A DNA stretch of 15,874 nt from Zygophlyctis sp. KS116 (lineage: Eukaryota > Fungi > Chytridiomycota), in the NCBI GenBank assembly GCA_054661495.1, contig BAAFSQ010000230.1, positions 1 through 15,874 on the forward strand, in the 5' to 3' direction. Below, piece by piece: positions 1,750-11,745 of the stretch. The translations under genes and the position numbers were made by a program. The notes below the pieces were generated by a model, which made no database searches, had not been told where the DNA came from, and was given only the letters and a program-made list of their open reading frames with translations. How positions within the stretch are numbered: position 1 is the stretch's first letter; each line of letters opens with the position of its first letter.

Positions 1750-3045
<1,296 letters not shown>

Positions 3046-9211: not shown

Positions 9212-10493
9212 TTATTTTTGTTTTTTGCAGCAGTGATTATGCGTTTGACCGTCATAGCCTAATAAGTCTTTGCAGACTAATAGTTAGTTTACTAGATGCA
9301 GGTTATACCGATAACACCTTGTAACCAGTCGGAATTTAGTATCTTATCGGCAGTAGATCGCTTTCTTGGATTAGGTTCAAGAATATTGTATAAAACATCC
9401 TGAGTATTTTCAGGTAAACAATCAATTGCCAAAAATCCGCGTTTCCTATGATTTAAATAAAATAAATAATGTGGATCATCCCTGACTGCATGTTTCCTGC
9501 CAAAAGTTAAAAATCAATTCATACCAAGGTAGACTAGAATGCTTCATTGCTAGATATATGACCCCACAAGCCCAAATATCTACTTCACGCCCATCATACT
9601 CCATTGATTCAAATTCTTCTGGCGCAATATATGGCTCTGACCCGCAAACACCACGTGATAAATGAGGTTGACTATCAAAAACAGTCTTAAAAACATCAGA
9701 TGCACCAAAATCTGAAATTTTCAAGTGACCCAACCCATCAAATAACAAATTTTCTGGTTTTAAATCACGATGTGCGACCCCCATTGAATGTAAATATTCA
9801 ATTCCTTTTAATAATTGTTTAAAACAACAGTTTATATCTTGATCTGTGAGCTTGTAATCCCTTAAAACCCCTAATAATGATCCGCCTAATGTTAATCATA
9901 TCGCGAGTGTACACCACCTGGACTCTAACCCTCTTTAAAGACTTTTAGACCTTTTAGGAGCCAGAGACAGGTAATAGTCTGTACAAGGATAAAATTTTTC
10001 CGTACCGGAACAATACTCCATGACTTCACACCACGTATGATTATCATCGACTACAAGATCAAGAGTTTCAACGACATTTTCATGATGTAAACTAGAAGAA
10101 ATACAAAATTCAGCCGCCATCTTTTTAATATATTCCTTTTCTGACTCTTGTTTTCTCCTTTTCCTAAATTCCTTGACAGCCAGTGTCTTTACAGAATTTG
10201 GATCATTTGAATTCTTCACAGTAACAACCTTTACACAAGAAGTTGCTCCTCGACCAATAATCTTTGAAAAGCAAACCCCATACTTTTCCTTTAAACAGCC
10301 TGAAGGCTCTTTATCTATTTTTTTTTCTTTTTTCTTGAAAATATTTAAAATTCTTTCCTTGAGCTTCCTCTTTGGAACATCTTCATCATCTCCAGACTCT
10401 GACGAGAAGATACTAGCCTTGCTTTTCTCTAGTCCCTTGACCCAGAGCTCTATCGGATTAGATTAAATGATTACCGCACTGAAAAGCAGTCAT
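9212..10493 (-). CDS. Ser/Thr protein kinase of the fungal HAL/NPR family (Hrk1/Rtk1/Oca2-like), ~358 aa, 5 exons
   Basis: Exons 10493-10475, 10449-10006, 9885-9525, 9496-9309, 9276-9212 (introns 25, 120, 28, 32 nt). Motifs: IGRGATSCV, AVKEFRKR, EFCISSSLHHENVVETLDL, WCEVMEYCSGGSL, AHRDLKPEN, KISDFG, GVCGSEPYIAPEE, DIWACG. The terminal exons are less certain than the core. Confidence 0.92.
9908..9985 (-). promoter_or_regulatory. 78-nt intronic RNA hairpin in kinase intron 2, enclosing a candidate poison exon (9978-9913)
   Basis: Sense-strand helices UGUAC/GUACA, AUUACCUG/CAGGUGGU, CUCUGGCUC/GGGUUAGAG, CU/AG and AAAGGU/GUCUUU, about 30 bp including 7 G-U pairs (folded by hand). Confidence 0.7.
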
Positions 10494-10500
10494 AAAACAA

Positions 10501-10528
10501 CGCCAGCCGCCACACGCCACACGCCATT
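10501..10528. repeat. Heptamer tandem array (CGCCANN x4) in the kinase/RPP0 divergent promoter
   Basis: cgccagc cgccaca cgccaca cgccatt, a GC-rich island in AT-rich DNA. Confidence 0.75.
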
Positions 10529-10650
10529 GAAAATCCTTTTTCTGCCCTGACTAAAAACCTCTGTAGTCCCTAGTTCCCCTGCGGATTAAAGACTCTAGTG
10601 GCGTAGTTTTTTTCGTCTTTAAATCAAAAGTGTACCTTGCATTAAAGAAA

Positions 10651-11745
10651 ATGTCAGCGGGAGACTCTACTAGATCAAAGAAGGAAGCTTATTTTACTAA
10701 ACTAAATGGATTATTAGAAGATTTTTCTACAATCTTTATTGTGACTGTCGATAATGTCGGATCTAATCAAATGCATCAGATTAGACATGCTCTTAGAGGT
10801 GAAGCAGTGGTCTTGATGGGGAAAAATACAATGGTTAGAAAAGTATTACGTTCATTGGCTCCAGAAAATCCTTCGTATGAAAGATTAATGGCTCAGGTTG
10901 TGGGGAATATTGGATTTGTTTTTACAAAGGGAGATTTAAAAGCTATAAAGAAACTTATACTTTCTAATAGAGTTGCTGCTCCTGCAAAGGCTGGTGCTAT
11001 TGCTCCTGTTGATGTTGTTATTCCTGCTGGTAATACTGGTATGGGTCCAGAAAAAACTTCTTTTTTCCAGGCTCTAGGTGTTGCTACAAAGATTGCTAGA
11101 GGTACTATTGAAATTATTTCAAATGTCGAGTTGATCAAGGCAGGGACAAAGGTAAGGTTTAGATTTTTAAGGTGTAGGTTGGAGCTTCTGAAGCTGCTCT
11201 TTTGAACATGTTAAACATTTCTCCTTTTACTTATGGAATGAATATTAAGGCTGTTTACGATCAAGGAGTTATCTTTTCTCCAGAGGTTTTGGATGTTGAA
11301 GATGAAACATTAATTGGACACTTTATGACTGGAATTAAGAATATTGCTTCTATTTCTTTGGCAGCAAATTTCCCAACTGTGGCTTCTGTTCCTCATTCTA
11401 TGGTCAATGGATACAAACGTGTTCTTGGTCTTGGATTGTCTTTGGATGAATACTCTTTTGAAGCAGTTGATAAGGTAAGATTTAAAAACTTTTATTGCAC
11501 AATGATTAAAACTAATTAAATGATCTACAGGATTTAAACAAGATCACTCTAATTTTTTCATGAGTGCATTAAACTCGCTAAAAAATTCTAATATATAGCT
11601 AAAGGAAATTTTGGCTGATCCATCACGATTTGCTGCTGCTGCTCCTGTTGCCGCTGCTGCTGCTCCTGCTGCAAAGGCTGAAGAGAAGAAGGAAGAAGCC
11701 AAGGAAGAGTCTGATGATGATATGGGCTTTGGTCTATTTGATTAG
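10651..11745 (+). CDS. RPP0: 60S acidic ribosomal protein P0 (uL10), ~314 aa, 3 exons
   Basis: Exons 10651-11151, 11178-11474, 11599-11745 (introns 26 and 124 nt). Motifs: [38 protein letters not shown], Ala-rich hinge, C-terminal [13 protein letters not shown]. Confidence 0.98.
11496..11568 (+). ncRNA. Intronic box C/D snoRNA, predicted 18S rRNA guide
   Basis: Terminal stem TGCAC/GTGCA; box C ATGATTA (11502-11508); box D ATGA (11560-11563); D'-like ATGA (11520-11523). CACTCTAATTTTTTC(A) just before box D is the exact reverse complement of the conserved 18S segment (T)GAAAAAATTAGAGTG (recalled from known 18S sequences). Confidence 0.85.

Follow-up and report, generated by a model that had tools for sequence, protein, structure and literature searches.

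A predicted hairpin that may compact a 120-nt intron in a HAL4/SAT4-like kinase gene of a chytrid with ~26-nt introns

How is a 120-nt intron accommodated in a genome whose predicted introns have a modal length of 26 nt, and could it harbour a switch between productive and unproductive splicing? The question arises from the window, the 15,874-nt stretch of DNA from the chytrid Zygophlyctis sp. KS116 that was analysed here, which contains a HAL4/SAT4-like Ser/Thr kinase gene on the minus strand (9212..10493; five exons, with a predicted ATG at 10493 and a stop ending at 9212). The gene finder places its introns at 10474-10450, 10005-9886, 9524-9497 and 9308-9277. Searching the kinase model exon by exon gave Pkinase matches in exons 2 and 3, that is, in both exons flanking the 120-nt intron, and the best named homologs were HAL4/sat4 kinases from Boothiomyces and Terramyces (Rhizophydiales chytrids). 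Near-identical kinase loci came from lake, river and estuary samples, and the gene order RPLP0 - kinase - Serinc is common to the syntenic orthologous loci. The kinase and RPLP0 are separated by a very short GC-rich divergent promoter with GGCGTGT repeats (10494-10630), the most variable stretch among strains (30 differences in 100 nt).

Intron base rates come from ~72 kb of the genome, on which the ab initio gene finder was trained; this program mis-parsed the 120-nt intron. The predictions, 130 of 150 of which measured 21-35 nt with a mode of 26, bear out the first-pass annotation's statement that typical introns here are short; the host genome has uniformly short introns. Ultra-short introns also reach cultured Terramycetaceae, since the ortholog in Boothiomyces sp. 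JEL0866 (L013:2900-4500) has introns of 19-20 nt.

Intron 2 (9886..10005, minus strand) is a 120-nt spliceosomal GT-AG intron of phase 1, lying within a Gly codon of MEYCSGG; skipping it restores the kinase frame, intron-less orthologs read straight through, and its position is shared with nine orthologous loci. Splice sites were scored as percentiles against position weight matrices built from the predicted short introns. The outer 5' splice site GTACGGA (9999..10005) is weak, at the 3rd percentile, and reads GTACGGAA in two synonymous-saturated orthologs; the outer acceptor TAG, with a branch-like TTAAC at 9895-9891 (9886..9895 together), is strong, at the 75th. Inside lie a cryptic acceptor CAG at +27 (9979..9981; 3rd percentile), a triplet that terminates just 7 of 130 short introns, the 66-nt middle segment proposed as a poison exon (9913..9978), an in-frame TAA (9935..9937) and a cryptic donor GTACACT (9906..9912; 8th percentile). 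These coordinates, the 27+66+27 split and the hairpin at 9985-9908 are as first annotated. Removal of the whole intron gives MEYCSGGSL and is, as claimed, the single productive outcome: the same TAA (9937-9935) ends the reading frame when the middle segment is included and when the intron is retained, in either part or in full. RNA contigs from four of five runs, all of them assembled, included none that spans intron 2. One contig ends at 10005, a G common to the spliced and unspliced forms, and is uninformative because it is of read length only (151 nt) with a depth of 2.

The predicted fold of the interior is a rod. The 78-nt hairpin (9908..9985, minus strand) has TGTACA bounding it at either side, contains 30 pairs, and folds at -27.5 kcal/mol (z -3.46), compared with -18.3 kcal/mol (z -1.18) for the opposite strand; the whole 120-nt intron folds at -31.5 kcal/mol (z -2.35). 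Seven G-U pairs had been counted for the hairpin; this number applies to the whole-intron fold, the hairpin itself having six. Folding at 21 °C with 7 bases at the intron start and 13 at its end kept unpaired, as in PMC6679479, gave intron 2 a spatial length of 29 nt (z -3.2); the length is ~42 nt when the 78-nt hairpin alone forms. The modelled spatial length is thus close to short-intron size. The basal UGUAC/GUACA helix, said to mask both internal sites, is predicted in the isolated intron, but adding 25 nt of exon to either end lowers its probability to 6-26% between 10 and 37 °C. The core rod is predicted to stay ~100% paired from 10 to 45 °C, which speaks against temperature as the unfolding trigger, and a thermosensor was rejected on the same grounds. 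Together with the allele and ortholog comparisons below, the strand asymmetry supports a hairpin that acts at the RNA level, masking or looping out the intron interior.

Comparison within the species was possible through five further assemblies carrying a 120-122-nt intron at this site (L016/L017, L020-L023). All five alleles retain an in-frame stop and the internal sites (TGA replaces TAA in L020 and L023, and TAA is kept at the same position in L016), and the hairpin energy lies between -27.0 and -31.0 kcal/mol in every allele. In the alignment, 98.7% of cells are paired, with four pairs changed to or from G-U, one double change and one pair broken. Equal numbers of random changes kept the hairpin energy in 27%, 16%, 23% and 4% of trials, figures to be read with L020 and L023 sharing changes and with L021 lying in a scaffold where the 5' part of the gene is replaced. 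Covariation across the five alleles was not significant (114 of 500 shuffles). We read the allele changes as suggesting selection on the fold, with the caveat that template-switch repair of palindromes could keep a hairpin too. The allele L016 is 97% identical over 5.9 kb and differs at none of the 54 flanking intron bases, while its middle segment has 12 changed columns and measures 68 nt, not a multiple of three. The flank conservation is not significant, as ~2 changes would be expected (the gene's three other introns have three changes). In L021 (L021:1-2080), unrelated sequence stands in place of RPLP0 and of the kinase gene's 5' third, the junction falling near window position 10200; a truncated duplicate, a rearrangement and a chimeric scaffold are the candidates.

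Between species, the intron at exactly the same site measures 24 nt in L015, 50 in L024, 52 in L012 and L041, 64 in L019, 65 in L014 and 109 in L025. It is absent from the Boothiomyces ortholog and from the paralogous HAL kinases of this genome, and a scan of metagenome contigs found one distant homolog only, intron-less. Between these species and the window, four-fold sites have reached saturation (identity 0.33-0.50), and the exon 3 tree did not resolve the base of the clade. Strong hairpins are predicted in L019 and L025 (z -4.3 and -5.3), with constrained spatial lengths of 24 and 41 nt, and no sequence similarity to the window hairpin was found in either. The 109-nt intron (L025:27-135) contains a near-perfect 46-nt hairpin and a 7-bp hairpin covering +5 to +21 beside the donor. 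The 50-52-nt introns have neither internal site, and their stems are weak or absent (z -1.35, +0.91), so moderate over-length is tolerated without a hairpin. The internal donor was not found in L019, L025, L012 or L024, whose interiors are unrelated; moreover, both L019 and L025 lack any GT at 21-35 nt before the 3' end, which leaves a cassette undefinable there. Judged from these sequences, what recurs in the long introns is the fold and not its sequence; the anatomy of a poison exon is confined to one species, the 66-nt segment having no counterpart in the others. The interpretation put forward in the first-pass annotation stands in part: strand asymmetry, retention in all strain alleles and independent hairpins in two orthologs favour a role at the RNA level, and the cassette or switch attached to it is not supported. 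Some residual likeness is seen between introns, with TCGCG ~20 nt from the 3' end common to the window intron and L025 and TCC found at +13 to +19 of several orthologs; a similar degree of likeness exists among other orthologous tiny introns.

We consider it probable that intron 2 is a structure-compacted long intron, whose hairpin would let a spliceosome tuned to ~26 nt treat the intron as short while hiding sites at the default distance. The spliceosome of this chytrid, judging from the predicted introns, works on introns of ~21-35 nt, and the hairpin would fold away the extra length so that intron 2 is handled as a short one. Both the internal sites and the stop would be by-products, since one TGTACA palindrome, at the base of the stem, gives rise to the two sites. 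Any mis-splicing would lead to a premature stop and, presumably, to clearance by NMD. Selection would act on the fold and not on the sequence, which is fully replaced between species. With the folds as modelled, intron 2 shows three testable features of structure-compacted long introns, and the fallback offered in the first-pass annotation, an intron-shortening structure, is the better fit.

Such introns are known from Giardia, Spironucleus and Trichomonas vaginalis, where introns measure ~25 nt (the figure for T. vaginalis) or exceed 50 nt, and stem-loops fold the rare long ones to 25-44 nt (Hudson et al. 2019, PMC6679479; restated in PMC12316389). The likeness lies in uniformly short introns and in stems that bring the splice sites close, here to a predicted 29, 24 and 41 nt. 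The present host differs in being a chytrid fungus with an intron-rich genome, in that the hairpin sequence is replaced between orthologs at one intron position, and in having cryptic default-distance sites at the stem base. In Saccharomyces cerevisiae, zipper stems occur widely between donor and branch point, for example in RPS17B (Rangan et al., PMC12350175); yeast introns, however, are hundreds of nucleotides long with linkers of 42-85 nt, as against ~20-40 here, and the yeast stems were shown by DMS probing, whereas the stem here is predicted. A limited literature search found no report of structure-compacted introns in chytrids.

Elsewhere in the genome, over-length predicted introns with long stems measure 151 nt (L037:1625-1775; G000:C70), 91 nt (L029, minus strand, in a tubulin gene; G000:C25) and 91 nt (L027:641-731; G000:C16), and only one of them has a z below -2.5. 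Against compaction, several introns of 50-62 nt in the ~72-kb sample have no significant fold. The predicted 62-nt intron at 2882-2943 (plus strand) of the window combines strong splice signals with a weak AU-rich stem (z +0.4) and, if real, would be a counter-example to strict compaction. Furthermore, three species keep the weak outer donor and an AG between +24 and +27, a persistence for which purely passive compaction has no need.

This persistence bears on the rival that survives best, regulated unproductive splicing without a cassette. Here the weak donor, a junction hairpin and the proximal acceptor would let structure or a protein shift productive splicing towards retention or use of the proximal acceptor, both of which lead to a premature stop. 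At a four-fold identity of 0.40, species still retain the donor shared by L019 and L025 and the TCC codon at the exon end; the weak donor and TCC are invariant in 7 of 7 intron-bearing close lineages, compared with 2 of 32 four-fold sites in exon 3. Each of the three hairpin lineages has a proximal AG, at +24 or +25 in L019 and L025 and at +27 in the window intron, and a 5-bp hairpin UUCCG/CGGAA with loop GUA (9998..10010), also possible in L019, is predicted to span the exon-intron boundary. However, other orthologous tiny introns likewise keep their donor regions between these species, and an AG at 24-32 nt occurs in 59% of shuffles. The proximal AG of L019 lacks a branch-like A, the 50-52-nt orthologs lack the AG altogether, and the donor accessibility of intron 2 (0.43) is ordinary beside the median of 0.37 in 129 short introns. 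We regard regulation of this kind as unlikely.

Compaction also has to be set against the possibility that an inverted repeat or small mobile element once inserted here, with TGTACA or TA as target duplication, and left the hairpin as a neutral relic, or that the hairpin is an intronic small RNA. TGTACA does flank the insert on both sides, with imperfect ends; no allele with an empty site appeared among those compared. Subtracting the insert and one TGTACA copy leaves a 48-nt intron, near the 50-52-nt orthologs. The middle segment of L016 varies faster than its flanks (12 columns against 0), and for the L025 hairpin the better fold is that of the non-transcribed strand. On the other hand, the hairpin is a single copy in the genome by BLAST and by a covariance model (150 of 3439 candidates scored), TGTACA pairs at such spacing number 24 against 24 in the control, and pairing is preserved through the allele changes. 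The Rfam search proposed in the first-pass annotation matched no known family over the hairpin at E <= 10, and the sequence is unconserved between species. A relic or small RNA of this sort seems improbable, and a dispersed MITE or introner-like family, which the first-pass annotation had itself named as an alternative, was rejected on the single copy.

The poison cassette originally proposed, in which the segment 9978-9913 would be included when the hairpin opens and would send the mRNA to NMD, fares worst. Unproductive splicing through poison exons coupled to NMD is a known mechanism, as are fungal TPP-riboswitch introns, and the likeness is that every alternative outcome here carries a premature stop and that predicted structure covers candidate splice sites; the cassette here, however, is unconserved and has no Rfam aptamer match. 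In its favour are two sub-introns of 27 nt and the retention of sites and stop in all five alleles. Furthermore, among 3000 shuffles of the interior of intron 2, 38% combined an AG at 24-32 nt after the start with a GT at 24-32 nt before the end, but just 3.7% did so with scores matching or exceeding those observed. A 4% event is nevertheless expected repeatedly, because the genome has many over-length introns, and the stop is uninformative, since 93% of chance subdivisions give a premature stop or frameshift. Subdivision and stop are close to chance expectation. The weakness of the internal sites, the missing donor in both long-hairpin orthologs, the core rod that is predicted to stay paired and the non-significant flanks of L016 tell further against inclusion. 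The argument that all parts are multiples of three is lost in the conspecific L016, and conservation of the internal sites, looked for in the orthologs, is absent, a result that the first-pass annotation had itself named as contrary to its cassette. We find the cassette very improbable.

Three known identities were also tried and rejected. Stwintrons, in which an inner intron sits inside the donor, branch point or acceptor of an outer one (PMC8469720, PMC9024468), likewise have two intron-like units within one intervening sequence; the units here lie side by side, 66 nt apart, and are not nested, no splice signal is split, and removing both fails to yield the reading frame. A TPP riboswitch-controlled intron was set aside for want of an Rfam aptamer match over the hairpin at E <= 10. 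An intronic snoRNA (C/D or H/ACA) was dismissed in view of the absent Rfam match and the unconserved interior, in contrast to that of the RPLP0 intron, which also lies in the window.

Taken as a compacted intron, this locus would be ordinary by itself, another long intron folded to size, and its value is comparative. Compaction by structure, described for yeast and for protists poor in introns, would extend to a fungal lineage rich in introns of ~26 nt, and the ortholog series (24-122 nt at one site, with three unrelated hairpins) would amount to a natural experiment that sets a length-measuring spliceosome against intron growth. More speculatively, over-length hairpin introns might be a reusable regulatory device in tiny-intron chytrids, combining a weak donor and a fold-hidden default-distance acceptor with freely replaced fold sequence, so that unfolding by a helicase, an RNA-binding protein or stress diverts the mRNA of a transporter-regulating kinase to NMD. 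We hold this to be doubtful; regulated NMD diversion, if true, would represent protein-free-looking splicing control in an early-diverging fungus.

The 124-nt RPLP0 intron (11475-11598) probably contains a box C/D snoRNA (11496-11568, plus strand), with a GCAC/GTGC terminal stem and AUGAUUA and AUGA boxes. Its Rfam matches were weak C/D matches only (E 0.095). The boxes and the 3' guide are conserved in L019, and the guide may be complementary to a conserved 18S stretch.
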